From the NCBI RefSeq assembly GCF_000315625.1, contig NW_005434645.1:21413-85412 (forward strand): DNA of 64,000 nt, given 5' to 3'. Positions 2,466 through 13,040 of this stretch are shown here, piece after piece (positions within the stretch are counted from its first letter, which is position 1; each line of letters opens with the position of its first letter). The stretch is from Guillardia theta CCMP2712. Lineage: Eukaryota; Protista; Cryptophyta. The notes under the pieces were generated by a model. That model made no database searches. It was not told the origin of the DNA and saw nothing but the letters and a program-made list of their open reading frames with translations. A program made the translations under genes and the position numbers.

Positions 2466-5400
2466 TCAAATTTTCAGGTGCTGCTTGAGCATGCCAAGAA
2501 GATTGTCCAGCTCTCGTACCTGCCCACACCAGCGTGAGGGAAACGAGGGGGAGAGGCAAAGGAGGGAAGAAAATCTGCAAGGGAGGAAGAAGGAGAGGGG
2601 AGGAAGCATGGAAGGGAGGGGAGGGGGAAAGGAGAAGAGGAGAGATACGAAGGAGGAGACGCAAGCAAGGCAGGAGGAGACGTGATGGAGGAAGGAGGAG
2701 AGGGAAATGGGGGAGGATCAACAAGACAGAAGATGCTACATACCTTGTTAACGACCTCTGCTCCTCCCGTTCCGTCTGTCTCTATGCTCACCGTGTTGTT
2801 CTCACCCGAAGCCCCACCGCCTGTTCTCCAGCTCAGCACCTTTCCACCTCCACCTCTCCTCCTCCCCCAGTCCCCAACACAACCAACTTCCGTTCCCTCC
2901 CTCCCGTTCCTTCCCGGCGTTCACCTCCTCCCGAGCTCGTTGCTGATGCCTCAGCCTTCTCTCCTCCCGAGACCTCCCGACGTCGAAGGAGCGACCGAAC
3001 GCGAGCCTCCAACTCCTGCGACCAGGATCAGCCAAAACCATCACCAACATTGTTCCCCACCTCCCCTCCTCTCTTCTGTTTCTCCTTTCCAACTCCTCTC
3101 TTTTCTTCTAGTCCTTGCTGACTTTCATCTCCTCTCCAACTTTTCTCCTTCTCTTCTCTTCTCCTCTTTCTTCTCTCCTCCCTCCTTCTGTACTTCTCCT
3201 CACCTTGGGCGCAAAAGGCTTCACGATGTAGTCGTCAGCACCCGCATCAAGACCCTTGATCCTGTCCTTCACGTCGTTCATCGATGTAAGCATCACGATC
3301 GGCACGCGCTTGTCATGCTTGCGGATCTGGCGGCAGAGCTCGAACCCATCCATCTTAGGCATGAAGACGTCCGAGATCACGATGTCAGGACGTGACTTGT
3401 GGAACTTCTCAAGCGCCTCCTCTCCATCCCCCGCGTCGATCACCCTGCTGTTGTCCTTCTCCAGCCTCGACTTCACCAGCAGCCTCAGCGTGTTGTCATC
3501 GTCCACCAGCAGGATCGTAGGTTTGTTCTCTGGCACCTCCTTCTTCACCGCCGTGCTGTTCGCTCGCCGAATCGCGGGACTCCTGACTCGCTCCACGGGC
3601 ACAGCACTCGGGAGAGCTGGAGCCGGAGCGGCTGCTCCGCTTGTTGCTGGCGTCACTGTTCCTGTGGCAACCGCCACGTCGGGTACAGTTGTGGTCCACT
3701 TGGCGATTATCTCATACAGGCGCTTCCTCTCCACAGGCTTGCTGATGTAGTCGTCCATCCCCGCGGCTATACACTTGTCCCTGTCGCCTTTCATGGCGTT
3801 GGCTGTTACGGCGATGATCGGAGTCGTCTGGTTCAGCCCTGCTCGCTGCCGGATTTTCTCCGTTGCCTGCCATCCGTCCATGATGGGCATGTTGCAGTCC
3901 ATGAGCACGAGGTCGAACTCAACCACTGCGGTGATGTTCACTGCCTCCACCCCGTTCTCAACGCAGTGCAGCTCGTGTCCCTTCTGCAGCAGCATCGCTT
4001 CCAGCAGCTTCCTGTTCGCCCAGTGATCCTCCACGATCAAAATCCTCGCTGCCTTCGACTCCTTCTTCGGCTGCACTGCAGCTGGAGCAGGAGCAGGAGC
4101 AGCCACAACGCTGCTCTGGGCAGCGCTAGGGGGCGCCTTGTTGCTCTTGTGCGAGTTCGACACGATGGCCTCGATGGCACTTTTGTCGTAGGGCTTGCAT
4201 ACGAAGCCCGAGAAGAGCCCGTCTTTGTTCTTTCCTCGAACTCCTTCGCTTGCTCGGCGCTCATCAACGCGATGATGGGCATCTTCGAGGATCGCTGCCG
4301 CAGCTCCTTGGCAATGTCCCAGCCGGACGGGCTGGGCATGTCAGAAGTGATCATCAGCATATCAAACTTCTCTGCCGCGAGCTTGTCCAGGCACTCGCTG
4401 CTCTTTGACAACTCCGCCATCTCGCACTCCAATCGCGACAAGATCGCCTTGAGCACCTTCCTCTGCCCGATGTCTCTGTCCACCACCAGCACCTTGGGCT
4501 TCCCCCGCAACTCTTCCTCCTCCTCTTTCTTTTCCACTGGAGGAGGCGAGTCGCACACTGTTCCCTTCCCCCGGCTGAGAGCCTCAGCGATCGTGGCAGA
4601 CAACTTGTCCTTGGACAGAGGCTTGCAAATCAGGTCCGTCACTCCTGCCTCTCGGAACTTGGGATCGTCGTCGGAGGGGTTGGGGCCGATGATGCCCAGG
4701 ATGACAGCTGAGTGCGAGCTCGCGGCTTCGCACGCCCTGATCTCCTTGCACGCGTCCCAACCCGACATGTTGGGCATGAAACCATCGAGGATCACGACAT
4801 CGTAGTTCACCTTCGCTGCCTTCTTCACTGCCTCTGCCCCGTTGTCTACAGTATCTACCTGGTGCTTGTCTCGCGTCAGCATCGCGCGAAGCATCATACG
4901 ATGCCCGGCGTCATCATCGACCACCAAGATGCGCAGTTGGTTGGAGCCAGCTGCTGGCTTCGCGAGCTCCTTGGAGGGGGGAGGGGGAGTACTGCAGGGA
5001 TCAGGCGAGTCGCATCGAGCTGCCTCTGCCTTGGAGATCCACTCACGGATCTTAGCGGTGAGCTTGTCACGTGAGATGGGCTTGAGGATAGTGTCAGTCA
5101 TCCCCGCGTCTTTGCATTTCTTCTCATCATCGCCAGAGGCACCAGTGACTCCGATGATTGTGATGGGCCGCCGACTTCCGGTCTCCTTTTCTCTCAACCG
5201 GATCTCTGCAGTTGCCTCCCATCCCGTCTTGTTCGGCATGAAGCCGTCCATCAGCACAGCATCGTACTTCACCTTCTGCACTGCCTTTACTGCCTGAGAG
5301 CCATCCTCTGCCGTGTCCACTTCGAACCCGTCCTTGCTCAGCATCGCCCGAAGCACCCGACGTTGCCCTGCATCATCGTCCACCACCAAGATCCTCTGCT

Positions 5401-8400
5401 TGCCGTCCAGGTCGCTCGCGTAAGCTGCACGGGAACTGCTCGTGGAGCACACCACGTGGGAGCCTCCAAGGACGGGATCGCGCTTGGACTCGGAGATGGT
5501 GGCGGCCTTGGCGATGGCTTCCTTGACCTTCATCCTGTCGAAGGGTCTCGTGATCAGCCCGTCCATCCCCGCCTGCGTACACTCGTGATACTCCTGACCA
5601 TCGAACCCGTTGACGATGCCGATCAGGATCGGTCTCTTGCCGGAGGTTGACCGTCTGATGTATCCCTGGATCTCCTTGGCTACAATGCTCGTCTTGGAGC
5701 CCAGAAGCTCGTAGTCGAGGATCACACAATCGTGAGAGAAGTGCGAGAAGGTGTCTTCCCCGTTACGCAACATCGCCATCACCTCGTTGAAGCTGTTGCA
5801 CAGGTCGCAAGTGTGAGACTCGCGGACGAGCATCGCTCGCAGCACGTGCTGCTGCTCCAGCTGCATGGCGATCAGGATCCTCATGCTTGGGATTCGCGCC
5901 ATCCCTCCACCCATGATCTCATCTTCCACCTCTACCGATTCCCCTGATCCACCTCGCTCAATCGCAGAGTGGGAATTGTGCTCCTCAGGAGAGATGCACT
6001 GCTTGAGCGCTGCGTGCAGTGCTGAGAGACGACCCGGGCGACTGAGCATGATGCAGCCAGGAACATTCCTGTACACCGCAGCCTGGCTCAGTTGCGTGAT
6101 AGGGCAGAAGACGATGCTCTGCATGTCACCAGGTTCCTGTGCATACTGAGCGACGATCTTCATGCAGGACCTGAGGTCATCAGTGATGGGCTCCTCGTCC
6201 GGGTTGTTCTCGTCGGTTATGGCGCTCCTCTGCTGCTGGACTGACGGGCATACGATGAGAATATCGACCGAGCGCTCCTTCAGATACGGCACGGCAGTTA
6301 GGATCCCCTCCACCGATCGAGGGACGATGCCGAACGTCTCCAGGTATCGCAGGATGGCGTTGCGAAGGGTCTCGTTGTCTGCCACCAGCATGATCCTCTT
6401 GCTGTGTACAGCGCTAGGGAGAGAGAAGGTGGGCTGCACTGCAGTGTTGATCTTCTTGAAGACCGCATTGAACCAGAACAAGGACCCCTTGCCCAGGTTG
6501 CTCTGGACCCCCATGGACCCGTTCATCAGCTCGGCAAACTGCTTCGAGATCGCAAGGCCGAGGCCCGTCCCTCCGTACGTGCGGGTTGTGGAGGAGTCGA
6601 CCTGGGAGAATCGGTTGAACAGCTTCTTCTGGCCCTCCTCGGAGATGCCGATGCCCGAGTCATACACTTTGAAACGGAAGGCCTGGTGGGTCGGCGTCTC
6701 CTCCTCCATCTCAGCCAGCAGGTACACCTGACCCGAATTGGTGAACTTGATCCCGTTGGACAGAAGGTTCAGCAGGATCTGCCTCAGCCTGTCAGGGTCG
6801 CCGTTCACCACCGTCGGGGTGTTGGGGCTCATATAGCAGCAGATCTCCAGCCCCTTGCCGAGGGCCTTGGAAGCCACGGAGTCAACCGTGTCCTCAATGA
6901 CCTGCCGGAGATCGAAGTCAACGCTGACCAGCTCGAGCTTGCCAGCCTCAATCTTGGTGAGATCAAGGATGTCATTTATAAGGACCAGTAGGGACTCGGA
7001 GGACGATTTGATCTGTTCCGCAAACTTCCTCTGCTCATCCAGCAAGCTTGTTTCGAGGATCAAGTCGTTCATCCCCATGATCACATTCAGCGGCGTTCTC
7101 ATCTCGTGCGACATGGTCGCCAAGAATTGCGACTTAGCATCGTTCGCAGCCTGAGCCTGGAAGAGGAGGGCCTCTTGTTCCATCAGTCGACGCATCTCGG
7201 TGATGTCCTGCCCTACCCCGATCACTCCGACTATGGCACCTGTGACGTCACGTCGAGTGGTGGCGTTCAGCAGAACTTCCACTCGACGTTTATCCTTGGT
7301 GAAGAGAGGAAACTCGAAGTTGGATTTCTCTTTCCCCAGCAGAGCATCGTCTAGTACTTTCTTCACCGACGGCCGGAACTCTTGAGTAATGTACACCTCC
7401 ACCAGATTCCTGCCCAGCACTTCAGCCTTCGAGTATCCAGTGATCTCTGCCGCCTTGTTGTTCCACTCGTTCACAAGCCCGTTGGCGTCGATACCGAAGA
7501 TGGGGGCGTTGGCTGTGTCGATGAAAGTCTGCAGCTCTTGTGCCACTCGAGTCTTCTCTTCCTCTACTTGTTTCCTCTCAGTGATGTCCTGCCCAACACC
7601 GATCACACCGATTGGCCGCCCTGTCACATCCCTTCGGGTAGTGGCATTCAGCAACACATCTACACGCCTCCCTGTATTCGTGAACAGAGGAAACTCAAAA
7701 TTGGCAGTCTCCTCACCCTCCAGCGCATTGTCAAGAACCATTTTGACCTGCTCCCTATATTCCTCAGTGATATACTTCTCGACCAGGTTCTGTCCGAACA
7801 CCATCTGTCTCGAGAAGCCAGTGATCTCTGCCGCCTTGTTGTTCCACTCGTTGATCAAACCCTTGTCGTCGATACCAAAGATGGGGGCGTTGGCCGTGTC
7901 AATGAAGGTCTGCAGCTCTTGCGCGACTCTAGTCTTCTCGATCTCGACTTCCTTTCTCTCGGTGATGTCCTGCCCTACCCCGATCACTCCCACAACCTGT
8001 CGAGCCATGTTTCTTCTTGGCGTCGCGTTCAGGAGCACTTCAACTCTCCGTCCATCTTTGGTATAGAGGGGAAACTCGAAGTTCGCCGTCCCCCGACCCT
8101 TCAGCGCGTTCTCCAAAACCTCGGATACGGTCGATCTGAAGTCCGCACTGATGTACACCTCCACAAGGTCTTGACCCAGCACCTCCTCACGGGAGAAGCC
8201 AGTGATCTCTGCCGCCTTGTTGTTCCACTCGTTCACAAGCCCCTTGTCGTCGATACCGAAGATGGGGGCGTTGGCCGTGTCGATGAAAGTCTGCAGCTCC
8301 TTCGCGACTCGCGTCTTCTCCTCCTCGAAAAGCTTCCTCGCCGTGATGTCCTGCCCTACCCCGATCACTCCCACCACGTTCCCGTTCGCATCCAGTCGAG

Positions 8401-11400
8401 GGGTGGCGTTGAGCAACACGTCCACTCGTCGCTCGTCCTTCGTGTAGAGGGGAAACTCGAAGTTCGCCGTTGCCACTTTCTGCAATGCCAAGTCGCAAAT
8501 CTTTCGAACGGACTGGCGGAACTCCTCGCTGATGTACACCTCCACAAGGTCTTGACCCAGCACCTCCTCCCGGGAGAAGCCAGTGATCTCTGCGGCCTTG
8601 TTGTTCCACTCGTTGACGAGGCCCTTGGCGTCGATACCGAAGATGGGGGCGTTGGCCGTGTCGATGAAAGTCTGAAGTTCGTTGGCAACACGAGTCATCT
8701 CCTCCTGAGATCGTTTGATATCCGTGATGTCTTGTCCAACGCCAACGACTCCGGTCACATTTCCGTGAGCGTCTCTTCTTGTCGTGGCATTCAGCAACAC
8801 CTCAACCCTCTGGCCATCGACTGTGTACAAGGGGAACTCGAAGTTCGCTGTACCAACACCCTTGAGCGCCTTGTCCAGCACATCTCGGACCGATACACGG
8901 TATTCCTCCGTGATAAAATCTTTGACAAGGCTGCGACCGATCACCTGCTCCCTAGAAAATCCCGTGATCTCTGCCGCCTTGTTGTTCCACTCGTTCACAA
9001 GCCCGTTGGCGTCGATACCGAAGATGGGGGCGTTGGCCGTGTCGATGAAAGTCTGCAGCTCTTGCGCGACTCTTGCCTTCTCCTCCTCAACACGTTTCCT
9101 CTCGGTGATGTCCTGCCCTACCCCGATCACACCAACGATCTTTCCCGCTGTGTTGCGACGAGAGGTGGCATTGAGAAGCACTTCCACCCTCCTCTTGTCC
9201 ACCGTATATAAAGGGAACTCAAAATCAGAAGTCTCAATACCAAGGAGAGCATTGTCAAGCACTTCCTTCACTGTAACGCGGTATTCTTCAGTGATGAAAT
9301 CCTGAACCAAGTTTCTCCCCAGCACATCTTCGCTGGAGAAGCCCGTGATCTCTGCCGCCTTGTTGTTCCACTCGTTTACGAGACCTTCTGCATCGATACC
9401 GAAGATGGGGGCGTTGGCCGTGTCGATGAAATTCTGTAGCTCCTTGGCCACTCGCGTCTTTTCTTCCTCTGCACGCTTCCTCTCTGTGATGTCCTGCCCT
9501 ACCCCGATCACTCCCACCACTCGGCCCCCGTCTCCAAGTCGCGTCGTGGCGTTCAACAGAACATCCACTCTGCGCATGTCCTTGGTGAAGAGAGGAAACT
9601 CGAAGTTGGCTGTCTCTGCGCCCTTCAACGCCTTGTCGAGTACTTCCTTCACCGAGGCTCTGAACTCTTCGGTGATGTACACCTCCACCAGATTCTTGCC
9701 CAGCACTTCAGCCTTCGAGTATCCAGTGATCTCTGCCGCCTTGTTGTTCCACTCGTTCACCAGTCCTTGGTCATCGATACCGAAGATGGGGGCGTTGGCT
9801 GTGTCGATGAAAGTCTGCAGTTCACGGGCAATACGCGTCATTTCAATCTCTACTCGCTTTCTCTGCGTGATGTCCTGGCCAACACCAAGCACCCCTACAA
9901 CGCGGCCGCTCACGTCTCGCCTCGTGGTAGCATTCAAGAGAACTTCGACTCGCCTTTGATCTTTCGTGTACAGAGGGAACTCAAAGTTGGAGGCCTCGAC
10001 TCCCCTCAGCGCGTTGTCGAGCACCTCCTTCACAGTCTCGCGATATTCCTCAGTGATGAAATCCTTCACCAGCTCCCTTCCCAACACCTCCATGCTCGAG
10101 AAATTGGTGATCTCAGCAGCCTTGTTGTTCCATTCGTTGATTCTGCCTTTAGCATCGATACCGAAGATTGGCGCATTCGCTGAATCGATGAACGCTTGCA
10201 ATTCTTGAGCTACCCGGAATTTCTCGGACTCAACCTGCTTCCTCTCTGTAATGTCTTGCCCTACCCCGATCACTCCCACGGCTTTCCCAGATTCGTCTCT
10301 CCTTGTCGTTGCATTCAACAGAACTTCAACACGCCTTTGATTCTTTGTGAAGAGGGGAAACTCGAAGTTGGCGGTCTCGTGACCTTGGAGCGCGTTATCG
10401 AGTACTTCCTTGACCGAAGAACGATACTCGTCGGTAATGTACACCTCTACCAGATCCTTGCCGAGCACCTCCTCCTTAGAAAACCCCGTGATCTCTGCCG
10501 CCTTGTTGTTCCACTCGTTCACAAACCCGTTCGCATCGATACCGAAGATGGGGGCGTTAGCCGTGTCGATGAAATTCTGTAGCTCCTCGGCTACCCGGGT
10601 CTTCTCTACTTCAACTTGTTTCCTATCTGTGATGTCCTGCCCTACCCCGATCACTCCCACAACATTCCCAGAGATATCCTTCCTCGGTGTTGCATTCAGG
10701 AGCACTTCGACACGTCTCTTATCAACTGTAAACAACGGAAACTCGAAGTTCGCCGTCCCCCGACCCTTCAGCGCGTTCGTCAGTACCTGAGACACCGACA
10801 CCCTGTAGTCTGGACTGATGAAATCTTCTACAAGATTGCGGTTCAACACCTGATCTTTTGAGAAGCCCGTGATCTCTGCCGCCTTGTTGTTCCACTCGTT
10901 CACAAGCCCGTTGGCGTCGATACCGAAGATGGGGGCGTTGGCCGTATCGATGAAAGTCTGCAGCTCCTTCGCGACTCGCGTCTTCTCCTCCTCGAAAAGC
11001 TTCCTCGCCGTGATGTCCTGCCCTACCCCGATCACTCCCACCACGTTCCCGTTCGCATCCAGTCGGGGGGTGGCGTTGAGCAACACGTCCACTCGTCGCT
11101 CGTCCTTCGTGTAGAGGGGAAACTCGAAGTTCGCCGTTGCCTTCTGTTGAAGAGCATTGTCCAGTACTTCGCGAACGGACTGGCGGAACTCCTCGCTGAT
11201 GTACACCTCCACAAGGTCTTGACCCAGCACTTCCTCCCGGGAGAAGCCAGTGATCTCTGCCGCCTTGTTGTTCCACTCGTTGACGAGGCCCTTGGCGTCG
11301 ATACCGAAGATGGGGGCGTTGGCCGTGTCGATGAAAGTCTGCAGCTCCTTCGCGACTCGCGTCTTCTCTCCTTCAACACGCTTCCTCTCTGTGATGTCTT

Positions 11401-13040
11401 GTCCAACAGCGATGACTCCGATGATATTCCCGTTGATGTCCCTGCGTGCTGTAGCATTCACAAGTACTTCAACTCTTCGCTTTTCTTCCTTTGTATACAA
11501 TGGGAACTCAATGTTTGATGTCTCCATTCCACACAAGGCGTTCTGTAGGACACCATTCACAGTGTTCCGAAACTTTTCGCCGATGTACACTTCAACAAGA
11601 TTCTGGCCAAGCACTTCTTGTTTTGAGAAACCTGTCAGTTCGGCAGCCTTCATATTCCACTCATTGACAAGCCCTTGATCATCTATTCCAAAGATCGGAG
11701 CATTGGCCGTGTCAATAAACGTCTGAAGCTCCTGCGCCACTCTGGCTTTTTCCATTTCTGCCATCTTCCTCTCCGTGATGTCTTGCCCAACGCCAATGAC
11801 GCCGATCACATTTCCTTCAACATCGCGTCGCGGGGTCGCGTTAAGCAGCACATCAACTCTACGATGATCCTTGGTGTACAACGCGAATTCAAAGTTGGCT
11901 GCCTCAAATCCCTTGAGGGCATTGTCTAGCACCAGCTTGACGGAGGACCTGAACTCGTCTGTGATGTAAATTTCAACAAGGTTCTTGCCAATGACTTCTT
12001 CCCGTGAAAACTGGGTTATCTCTGCTGCTTTCAGATTCCACTCGTTGACCAAACCCATGTGATCGATCCCGAAGATGGGTGCATTCGCTGTGTCAATGAA
12101 GTTCTGCAGCTCTTGAGCCACCCTTGCCCTCTCATCTTGAAATCGCTTTCGGTCAGTGATGTCTTGACCCACTCCCATAATGCCTATGACTTCCCCATCA
12201 ATATTCTTGCGAGCAGTCACGTTGAGCAACACTAACAATCTCTGCTTCTTCGCATCAAGGAGCGGCAATTCGAAGTTGGTACGATTGTTGCCATTCAAGG
12301 CGTCATTCAACAAATCCCGTACAGAAACTTGGTTTTCATGTGCTATGAAGAATTCGATGAAGTTCTTCCCAAGGACTTGATTTCTTTTGAATCCTGAAAC
12401 TTCCTCTGCCTGATCATTCCACTCATTAATGTTGTAGCTGACGTCTGTCCCAAAGATAGGGGCATTCACAGTATCTATAAAGGATCTGAGCTCCTGCGCC
12501 TTCCTGACCATCTCCTGCTCGTATTGCTTTCTATCAGTGATATCTTGACCAACGAACAAAACTTCTTCACAACTCTTCGCATCATCCTGTACTATGGGAA
12601 TTCCACGGAGCGACAAAAAAATCACAGACCCATCCGGCTTTGATGCAGAGAATTCGAGAGAAACTGATTCTCTCTTAGATTTGGCATGCTCAATGCCTTG
12701 CTGTATCTGCGCAATGAAATCAGGACGAAGCACACAAGGAAGATCGTGGTATGACCTTGGACTTCAAAACATCCGCCACCAAGAACTCGTATATGCTCTT
12801 CCCCACTACATCCCCCTTCTTCCAGCCCATCTGCCTCTGCGATATCGCATTCCAGTCCCTAAGGCGATCATGCAGATCGATCGAGAAATGAATCAGGCCA
12901 AGGCGTTCCAGCACTTCCCGTGTGCATGCGTCTCTGCGGTTAGGGGACTCCAGCTCTCGTAGTCTCTCCTCCAAATCTCGGTTCCTTCGCTCGAGCTGAC
13001 TGATCTTCTCCTCGTGCCCAGACTGCCCGAGGCCCCACAT
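2466..13040 (-). CDS. Giant soluble hybrid histidine kinase: 15 PAS + HisKA + HATPase_c + 7 receiver domains (~3,340 aa)
   Basis: Exons 13040-12756, 12706-3204 (with a -1 frameshift near 4230), 3015-2925, 2820-2744 and 2519-2466, all joined by GT-AG introns. 14 repeats of FIDTANAPIFGID...GQDIT plus one divergent N-terminal PAS. H-box FLATMSHEMRTPLN, N-box QILLNLLSNGIKFT, G1 DSGIG, F-box, G2 GGTGLGL. Receivers show DD/D/T/KP motifs. Confidence 0.95.
7195..12495 (-). repeat. Coding tandem repeat: 14 PAS units of ~381 bp
   Basis: GCCTTGTTGTTCCACTCGTT and ATACCGAAGATGGGGGCGTTGGC recur with ~381 bp period on the + strand. Confidence 0.95.

Follow-up and report, generated by a model that had tools for sequence, protein, structure and literature searches.

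A receiver domain of the OmpR/PhoB type ends a nuclear multi-PAS hybrid histidine kinase of Guillardia theta

Introduction

OmpR-type regulators form the largest family of response regulators in bacteria. To our knowledge, the nuclear genomes of eukaryotes have almost none, and in algae they survive mainly as the plastid-encoded ycf27. The OmpR/PhoB family includes PhoP, YycF/WalR, MtrA, PhoB, and RpaB, in which the receiver usually has a winged-helix partner.

The part of PMC6324907 that deals with multi-PAS kinases treats them by domain architecture. It describes three multi-PAS histidine kinases in the cryptophyte Guillardia theta and makes no mention of an OmpR-type terminal receiver. GthetHK2/7/9 and their oomycete and haptophyte relatives, as presented there, have the same PAS array, HisKA/HATPase_c core, and C-terminal receivers as the kinase analyzed here. 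In the oomycete relatives, an Hpt is joined to a receiver (PMC6324907, same part), whereas a six-frame scan, which can miss intron-split genes, found no Hpt in the present assembly.

Here, we describe a nuclear, intron-bearing gene for a multi-PAS hybrid kinase that ends with an intact receiver of the OmpR/PhoB subfamily (REC7) without the usual winged-helix partner. This arrangement, an OmpR-type receiver without a DNA-binding domain at the end of a nuclear multi-PAS kinase, is kept in relatives.

Organization of the kinase gene

The window, meaning the whole stretch of 64,000 nucleotides that was analyzed (contig NW_005434645.1, positions 21,413 to 85,412), carries the kinase gene on its minus strand (Table 1). 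The encoded protein exceeds 3,000 residues, with at least 14 PAS domains in the N-terminal array and REC7 as the C-terminal module and last folded domain. No hydrophobic signal peptide was seen at the kinase N-terminus, which would predict a cytosolic protein. REC6 lies upstream of REC7, and both are contained within one open frame. REC3, REC4, and REC5 fall into a single starred clade in the tree. In a by-eye alignment to REC3, the phospho-acceptor position of REC5 is occupied by Thr. In this assembly, the frame change in REC5 would, if real, end translation ahead of REC6 and REC7.

The preliminary description had counted seven receivers. Five of these are solid Pfam receivers, whereas the other two, ‘REC1’ and ‘REC2’, are degenerate and score under the Pfam cut-off. 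Two paralogues of the kinase are present in the same genome. The assembly searched comprises 87.15 Mb, and the G. theta nuclear genome is reported as 87.2 Mb (PMC4007541).

Table 1. Features of the kinase gene, in window coordinates.
Feature	Position	Strand	Basis or remark
N-terminal start and PAS array	7184..13040	(-)	coiled-coil-like start MWGLGQSGHEEKISQLERRNRDLEERLRELE near 13040 (position approximate)
HisKA + HATPase_c core	6467..7138	(-)	Pfam, residues 1866-1931 and 1978-2089 of ORF 4037-12733
‘REC1’ and ‘REC2’, degenerate receiver-like stretches	5459..6421	(-)	Pfam 13.8 and 17.3 bits, cut-off 30.2
REC3 (5072-5401) and REC4 (4613-4942)	4613..5401	(-)	Pfam; pair of similar receivers
REC5, receiver-like	4232..4498	(-)	interrupted by a one-base frame change within 4232-4274
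REC6, hybrid-kinase-type (BarA/RcsC/ArcB-like)	3729..4055	(-)	Pfam, NCBIfam/PDB matches, trees
REC7, exon part, β1 to β5, ending ...DDYIVKPFAPK	3204..3533	(-)	Pfam Response_reg, residues 217-320 of ORF 3108-4163
GT-AG spliceosomal intron, 188 nt, phase 0	3016..3203	(-)	between β5 and α5 of REC7
Exon with REC7 α5 ELEARVRSLLRR (3015-2980) and start of low-complexity tail	2925..3015	(-)	3' boundary modelled
Short exon, ..GGASGENNTVSIETDGTGGAEVVNK	2744..2820	(-)	inferred boundaries; donor GTATGT at 2743; weak tblastn match to P0001 tail
Last exon, VRELDNLLGMLKQHLKI and stop TGA 2468-2466	2466..2519	(-)	sequence; matches orthologue ends

Splicing and the 3' end of the gene

On the minus strand, exon 1 of REC7 ends at 3204 with GAT GAC TAC ATC GTG AAG CCT TTT GCG CCC AAG, directly followed by GTGAGG. 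The donor GT occupies 3203-3202 and the acceptor AG 3017-3016, and the frame is kept. Exon 2 begins at position 3015, where it reads GAG TTG GAG GCT CGC GTT CGG TCG CTC CTT CGA CGT, which encodes ELEARVRSLLRR. Four environmental orthologues (P0001-P0004; exon-1 identity 85-89%) are continuous through the splice point (KPFAPKELEARVRSLLRR, ...DDYIVKPFAPKELEARVRSLLRR), and this uninterrupted reading provides independent support for the splice. The junction of 3204 to 3015 given in the preliminary description was thus confirmed by its GT/AG sites, its phase, and the orthologues. P0013 has an intron-like insert at another site, between DRIK and GLDAG, indicating that intron positions vary between lineages. 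Bacterial contamination was rejected as an explanation, since REC7 shares its reading frame with REC6 and is split by a GT-AG intron.

The boundary at 2925 (donor GT 2924-2923) was placed from the frame and the GT/AG rule only; tblastn of the orthologue tails was further evidence for the exon itself. A gene end at the TGA near 2835 was considered and rejected, and two further short exons were modelled instead (Table 1). The resulting tail after REC7 comprises ~63 residues and ends at 2466; the orthologue tails comprise 65-78 residues. The orthologue C-termini read VVAKVQELDxLIGxFNQH, the same conserved amphipathic helix as VRELDNLLGMLKQHLKI. AlphaFold2 predicted a helix at residues 161-188 of the orthologue segment P0002:225-413 (pLDDT means of 83-94 in 10-residue blocks), preceded by a disordered linker. 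The order REC6-REC7-tail and the terminal helix are kept in the orthologues.

These comparisons also bear on whether REC6 and REC7 are made in this strain. The frame of the long ORF meets a TGA at 4037, and the β5/α5 part of REC5, REC6, and REC7 are in a different frame, open from ~4274. Such an arrangement would be expected if the frame change were real, the 3' part of the gene decaying, and REC7 without present function. We regard this as improbable: REC6, REC7, the three splice sites that follow, and the terminal helix have all been preserved intact, at 85-89% identity to the orthologues, and REC5-REC6-REC7 is continuous in P0001. Decay therefore fits less well than a one-base error of assembly or a change that arose very recently.

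Classification of REC7

REC7 contains the acidic pocket, the phospho-acceptor Asp, the Thr/Ser, and the Lys of a receiver, as judged by Pfam and alignment. Its NCBIfam, PDB sequence, and Foldseek matches are mostly OmpR-family receivers, and the top-ranking matches by PDB sequence and by fold belong to the OmpR/PhoB family. In the hmmalign alignment, REC7 is 50-55% identical to OmpR-type receivers versus 26-38% to the gene's own receivers. The resemblance spans the whole domain and extends beyond α5.

The α4-β5-α5 region consists of DRIKGLDAGADDYIVKPFAPK from exon 1 joined to ELEARVRSLLRR from exon 2, and follows the family pattern GADDY.xKPF..xEL.AR....LRR across both exons. The α5 motif EL.AR...RR, located in exon 2, was found in 35 of 72 OmpR-type receivers (49%) versus 5 of 559 receivers from hybrid or multi-receiver proteins (0.9%), a ~50-fold enrichment. 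The orthologue REC7s retain every residue that is invariant over 30 aligned receivers (among them D14, D57, T85, Y104, and K107 in P0002:225-413 numbering). In α5, E113 and R117 are likewise invariant in the orthologue REC7s and the OmpR-type receivers, while R123 and R124 are nearly so.

Within the genome, REC7 is unique, with a self match of 234.6 bits and a next best match of 51.7 bits. The two paralogous kinases, located on other contigs, have REC3/4-like and REC6-like receivers and no REC7-like one.

Phylogenetic analysis

We constructed two maximum-likelihood trees. The window is represented in both by REC7 exon 1 only, and the α5 evidence comes from the natural orthologues. REC1 and REC2 were excluded from both trees. 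Tree 2 is the fuller one, with α5 and plastid-like Ycf27 added and 11 very long-branched random receivers excluded. The bacterial sample is partly biased, one scan having used six exact peptide patterns and another being word-based; no RpaB (DDYVVKPF) was among the matches listed for the six-pattern scan, which was treated as a biased sample. The exhaustive search of representatives ranked proteins by a score summed over 3-5 receivers per protein and did not yield nearest single domains, so its proteins served solely to supply hybrid-type receivers.

The REC7 clade (98/98 in tree 1; 100/99 in tree 2) lies inside an OmpR-type cluster with moderate support in tree 1 (63/79) and in tree 2 (84 rows; 66/76), from alignments whose ~110-125 columns are too few for deep receiver phylogeny. 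The corresponding cluster of 83 rows in a quick tree received an SH-aLRT of 95. Path lengths from REC7 were 1.3-1.7 to OmpR types versus 3.0-3.6 to the gene's own receivers. A single clade of REC7 with REC3-6 was rejected by the AU test (ΔlnL 90.8, p = 0.012). In both trees, REC6, which is of the bacterial BarA/RcsC/ArcB type, falls at a distance from REC7, among the receivers that come from multi-domain proteins. REC3-6 group with such receivers, whereas REC7 does not join them. Grouping of REC7 with generic hybrid-kinase receivers, which the preliminary description had named as refuting its view, was not observed.

An ordinary hybrid-kinase receiver, duplicated in the gene or inherited with the kinase, could have acquired an OmpR-like α5 by convergence. 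Receivers are short and fast-evolving, the backbone is weak in both trees, and the OmpR-type cluster also takes in three receivers of multi-domain proteins (P0012_d2, P0034_d2, and P0258_d2). However, the AU rejection, the low identity and long paths to the gene's own receivers, the OmpR likeness over the whole of REC7 rather than α5 alone, and the missing REC7-like receiver in both paralogues make convergence very improbable. REC7 is probably an OmpR/PhoB-type receiver separate in origin from the other receivers of the gene. Both the OmpR-type assignment of the terminal receiver and its different origin, as first described, are thus upheld by the identities, the cluster position in two trees, the AU test, and the α5 motif. 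Eukaryotic two-component proteins can, on this reading, combine receivers of differing ancestry.

Absence of a DNA-binding domain and proposed mechanism

In comparison with the OmpR/PhoB family, REC7 has no winged helix, is nuclear-encoded, is interrupted by a spliceosomal intron, and precedes a tail with a terminal helix. A Pfam search of the downstream minus-strand ORFs found no domain, and the orthologue tails contain no further Pfam domain and no Trans_reg_C. Across the whole 87-Mb assembly, Trans_reg_C (PF00486) gave no match at E ≤ 1; the same model was detected in 10 of 14 control genomes. These results agree with the earlier remark that no winged-helix domain follows. The kinase as a whole protein is not a member of the OmpR/PhoB family; only its receiver REC7 is of that type.

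REC7 is probably not a duplicate of the gene's other receivers. It probably represents a separate module from a bacterial-type OmpR-family response regulator, added before the divergence of the sampled relatives. We propose a mechanism that, taken as a whole, is tentative and stands at somewhat less than even chances. REC7 may act as the terminal phospho-acceptor, fed by the kinase's own HisKA; this transfer could be direct, because the six-frame scan detected no HPt in the genome. Phosphorylation would then promote dimerization of REC7 through its α4-β5-α5 face, as in OmpR/PhoB regulators. The output would be other than DNA binding, possibly an altered oligomeric state of the giant kinase. 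Alternatively, the conserved C-terminal amphipathic helix might be exposed to a partner. REC7 offers a natural test of the OmpR α4-β5-α5 dimerization switch freed from the DNA-binding domain.

Comparison with RpaB and Ycf27

Of all groups compared, RpaB/Ycf27 (NF045944) gave the highest pairwise and HMM scores to REC7. The exon-1 receiver scored 132.6 bits with the NCBIfam RpaB model, against 109.8 bits for the next model and a full-length cut-off of 330 bits that a receiver alone is unable to reach. Cyanobacterial RpaB proteins scored 117-129 bits with up to 54.6% identity, and the other OmpR receivers found ≤115 (tblastn, phmmer). The α5 of REC7 is identical at 10 of 12 positions to that of one RpaB (locus L108). 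REC7 could accordingly derive from cyanobacterial RpaB or plastid Ycf27 by endosymbiotic transfer of the receiver half of ycf27/rpaB, followed by a graft onto the nuclear kinase. We consider this origin unlikely. Generic OmpR regulators, too, have the RpaB HMM as their top match, and NCBIfam rank alone was therefore rejected as evidence. Base-to-tip paths are short for both RpaB (0.89) and REC7 (0.66), against a median of 1.03, so that the two would be expected to score as highly similar even if they were not kin. The plastid-like Ycf27 sequences show 43-53% identity to REC7 and are no closer to it than cyanobacterial RpaB.

Tree 1 placed REC7 as sister to the RpaB clade, but with a support of just 33/78. 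In tree 2, the clade of RpaB and Ycf27 (60/96) leaves REC7 out, and REC7 stands beside an MtrA-like regulator and three multi-domain receivers (59/86). A tree constrained to REC7+RpaB+Ycf27 was 50.9 lnL worse, although the AU test did not reject it (p = 0.113). An α1 Arg (column 23) is common to REC7 and 100% of RpaB, and occurs in 1% of other OmpR receivers; however, REC7 matches only 1 of the 9 columns that form the RpaB signature, no more than background OmpR receivers do. These observations do not support the RpaB(Ycf27)-type, plastid origin given in the preliminary description. Its notion of a bacterial or plastid domain grafted onto a nuclear kinase is supported for the fusion of a bacterial OmpR-type module and unsupported for the plastid source.

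The α1 of a receiver is its partner-specificity helix. Most RpaB signature columns lie in α1, and they could conceivably have been lost when the partner changed.

G. theta has kept ycf27 in its plastid and carries a Hik33/ycf26-type kinase in the nucleus (PMC2677595, PMC1885438, PMC6324907), indicating that genes of plastid two-component systems were transferred to the nucleus in this lineage. Nuclear genes resembling ycf27 have been reported from diatoms (PMC2677595). The plastid Ycf27 of G. theta is absent from the present assembly. On present evidence, a plastid-to-nucleus transfer of the domain is not documented. Slightly less likely again than the transfer itself is a fuller scenario, in which the receiver half of plastid Ycf27/RpaB would have entered the nuclear genome and become joined to a cytosolic multi-PAS kinase, keeping its OmpR-type dimer face as the phosphorylation-controlled dimerization switch of a giant single-chain integrator. 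If true, host signalling would have re-used a single domain of the endosymbiont's regulatory hardware.

The plastid-like Ycf27 sample was obtained by scanning metagenome contigs with a back-translated pattern of the motif WGYTPERYLDTRVV (PMC1885438), which yielded 28 AT-rich contigs. One of them carries rpoC1-rpoB-ycf27-tRNA-His-ycf4-DUF3685-psaF-ccs1, a plastid-looking context. The Ycf27 contigs are probably of plastid origin, and haptophyte-like rather than cryptophyte.

Gene Layout and Splicing

A very large gene on the minus strand carries REC7 at its 3′ end (see the table). Exon 1 of the domain ends in ...DDYIVKPFAPK at 3204, followed by GTGAGG, and an acceptor AG at 3017–3016 precedes GAG TTG GAG GCT CGC..., which translates to ELEARVRSLLRR. 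The splice from 3204 to 3015, as proposed in the preliminary description, proved exact: the intron is 188 nt long, GT–AG, and in frame. It was independently confirmed by four orthologues predicted on environmental contigs (P0001–P0004; 85–89% identity to exon 1), which read KPFAPKELEARVRSLLRR without a break. In a further relative, P0013, an intron-like insert in REC7 separates DRIK from GLDAG, and the window's site, between KPFAPK and ELEAR, has no insert. Intron positions in the domain therefore vary between lineages, implying that the introns were gained once the domain was already nuclear.

The frame originally read downstream of REC7 is closed by a TGA near 2835, yet the gene continues. 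The orthologue tails end with a conserved helix, VVAKVQELDxLIGxFNQH, and its counterpart in the window, VRELDNLLGMLKQHLKI plus a stop, lies behind an AG acceptor. The preceding exon ends in ...AEVVNK at 2744, followed by GTATGT.

Features of the kinase gene (inner boundaries of the 3′-end model were inferred from frame and GT/AG alone)
Feature	Position	Strand	Content	Source
ORF	4037-12733	minus	at least 14 PAS, then HisKA + HATPase_c, then receivers	Pfam
ORF	3108-4163	minus	REC6 + REC7, single frame	Pfam
Exon	3015-2925	minus		3′-end model
Intron	2924-2821	minus		3′-end model
Exon	2820-2744	minus		3′-end model
Intron	2743-2520	minus		3′-end model
Exon	2519-2466	minus	conserved terminal helix	3′-end model

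REC7 is an OmpR-Type Receiver of Separate Origin

The assignment of REC7 to the OmpR type is supported by several comparisons. Against solved structures, exon 1 best matched B. subtilis PhoP (102 bits), then VicR, MicA, MtrA, and YycF, nearly all matches being OmpR-family receivers. The best NCBIfam models were RpaB (132.6 bits), MtrA (109.8), PleD (106.4), and PhoB (105.7). On common match columns, REC7 showed 50–55% identity to OmpR-type receivers, versus 26–38% to REC3–REC6. Exon 2 opens with the α5 motif EL.AR...RR, detected in 35 of 72 receivers from Trans_reg_C-bearing regulators versus 5 of 559 multi-REC/hybrid receivers. All residues invariant in 30 aligned OmpR-type receivers are kept by the orthologue REC7s, including D57, taken to be the acceptor Asp, T85, Y104, K107, and, in α5, E113 and R117 (numbering of P0002:225-413). 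In an AlphaFold2 model of this orthologue segment, the receiver had a pLDDT of ~97, and its top Foldseek matches were the RpaA, YycF, RstA, PhoP, VicR, KdpE, and MtrA receivers; this result is consistent with the OmpR type but not discriminating, since all receivers have one common fold.

The different origin of REC7 from the gene's other receivers, suggested earlier, holds. In a tree of 135 receivers over the exon-1 span (tree 1; IQ-TREE, LG+C20 PMSF), REC7 and its orthologues were joined at 98/98 inside the OmpR-type cluster, and REC3–REC6 fell among receivers of multi-domain proteins. Forcing REC7 and the other receivers, with orthologues, into one clade cost 90.8 lnL and was rejected by the AU test (p = 0.012); "other receivers" here denotes four domains, leaving aside two receiver-like stretches below the Pfam threshold. 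Within the genome REC7 stands alone, its self match scoring 234.6 bits and the next best 51.7. Our receiver trees rest on ~110–125 columns and have a weak backbone, the bacterial sample is partly biased by the search methods, and the single exhaustive search, being ranked by summed multi-domain score, gave no useful information.

Guillardia theta is described as having ten histidine kinases, including three "multi-PAS HKs" and one nuclear Hik33/ycf26-type kinase, and the domain-architecture descriptions in the accessible portion of that report do not mention an OmpR-type receiver (PMC6324907). The G. theta plastid retains ycf27 and lacks ycf26 (PMC2677595, PMC1885438). The gene described here is a eukaryotic multi-PAS hybrid kinase whose last receiver is of OmpR type and lacks a DNA-binding domain. 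Two paralogous kinases, at G000:C78:394745-398272 and G000:C154:72006-75356, have REC3/4-like and REC6-like receivers and no REC7-like domain; they are probably the other two published multi-PAS HKs.

Resemblance to RpaB and Ycf27

The likeness to RpaB–Ycf27 noted in the preliminary description is accurate as a resemblance. Of 31 genomes sampled from the cyanobacterial phylum, 30 yielded RpaB, and these proteins scored higher with REC7 than anything else compared (117–129 bits, with identity reaching 54.6%). Among the matches listed, 592 bacterial regulators found by pattern scored ≤109 bits, and word-search matches ≤115 bits.

Five observations argue against kinship. Generic OmpR regulators (e.g., P0045, P0050, P0059, and P0068) likewise have the RpaB HMM as their best-scoring model. 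Among nine RpaB signature columns (≥80% conserved in RpaB, ≤25% in other OmpR receivers), most of them in α1, the partner-specificity helix, REC7 shares one, equal to typical background receivers. Base-to-tip paths of 0.66 for REC7 and 0.89 for RpaB (median 1.03) make both short-branched and hence near the family consensus. Scanning metagenome contigs with a pattern from the motif printed in PMC1885438 yielded 28 contigs of 30–39% GC with ycf27-like genes of at least three sequence types; one (L131), with the order rpoC1-rpoB-ycf27-tRNA-His-ycf4-DUF3685-psaF-ccs1, looks like red-lineage algal plastid genomes. At 43–53% identity, these plastid-like Ycf27 proteins are not nearer to REC7 than cyanobacterial RpaB is. 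Finally, in tree 2 (129 rows, with α5 added except for the window's row, which is exon 1 only, and five plastid-like sequences), the RpaB+Ycf27 clade (60/96) excluded REC7, which instead joined three multi-domain-protein receivers and one MtrA-like regulator (59/86).

Tree 1 did place REC7 as sister to RpaB, with support of just 33/78, and forcing REC7, RpaB, and Ycf27 together cost 50.9 lnL and was not rejected (AU p = 0.113). Within the OmpR family, a cyanobacterial or plastid donor is possible but unsupported.

Absence of a Winged Helix and Possible Output

No winged helix follows REC7, as first described. The tail past α5 is ~63 residues, leaving no room for one, and a Pfam search of the downstream ORFs gave no domains. 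Trans_reg_C (PF00486) was not found in a six-frame scan of the 87,145,349-base assembly (published nuclear genome, 87.2 Mb; PMC4007541), whereas 10 of 14 control genomes gave matches, and the orthologues showed no domain beyond REC7. In all relatives the protein closes with a conserved amphipathic helix, VVxKVxELDxLxGxxxQH (window 2466–2519; P0002, P0003, and P0004 C-termini), and a low-complexity linker lies between it and REC7. In the AlphaFold2 model of P0002 this helix is predicted confidently (10-residue block pLDDT means of 83–94) after a disordered linker.

REC7 looks like a competent phospho-acceptor. Hpt (PF01627) was found neither in the kinase by Pfam nor in a six-frame genome scan, which could miss intron-split genes; the simplest route would therefore be phosphotransfer from the kinase's own HisKA, direct or with competition among receivers. 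Phosphorylation of OmpR/PhoB regulators leads to a symmetric dimer through α4-β5-α5, and the sequence of this face is kept in REC7. As the DNA-binding domain is absent, we infer that the dimer itself would be the output, which could act through the kinase's own oligomeric state or through the conserved terminal helix. The N-terminus as read (MWGLGQSGHEEKISQLERRNRDLEERLRELE) has no hydrophobic signal peptide, which counts against plastid import and hence against direct contact with plastid Ycf27. Kinases encoded in the assembly carry up to seven receiver-like domains, yet no Hpt appeared in the scan; a canonical His-Asp-His-Asp relay may be missing, or its Hpt may lie in a gene that is divergent or split by introns.

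Other Receivers

Several receivers may be non-phosphorylatable, given a Thr at the REC5 acceptor position (by-eye alignment to REC3) and the degeneracy of REC1 and REC2. The latter (5459–6421, minus; the first two after the kinase core) reached 13.8 and 17.3 bits with the Response_reg model of Pfam, below threshold, and are at best degenerate pseudo-receivers. A one-base frame change occurs within REC5 at ~4232–4274 (minus strand): after ...AEQAKEFEERTKT, the frame of 2898 codons continues out of frame until the TGA at 4037, and REC5 β5/α5 (KNKDGLFSGFVCKPYDKSAIEAIV), REC6, and REC7 lie in a different frame from the long ORF. The P0001 orthologue is continuous across this site; the change is either a mistake in the assembly or a genuine lesion.

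Elsewhere in the assembly, a nuclear gene at G000:C25:719238-722537 encodes the second-best RpaB-HMM match of the genome (64.6 bits), a receiver (...DYVTKPFNRQELMARITTQV); a Glu-rich stretch comes after it and, further on, by eye, the apparent start of a nucleotide cyclase domain.
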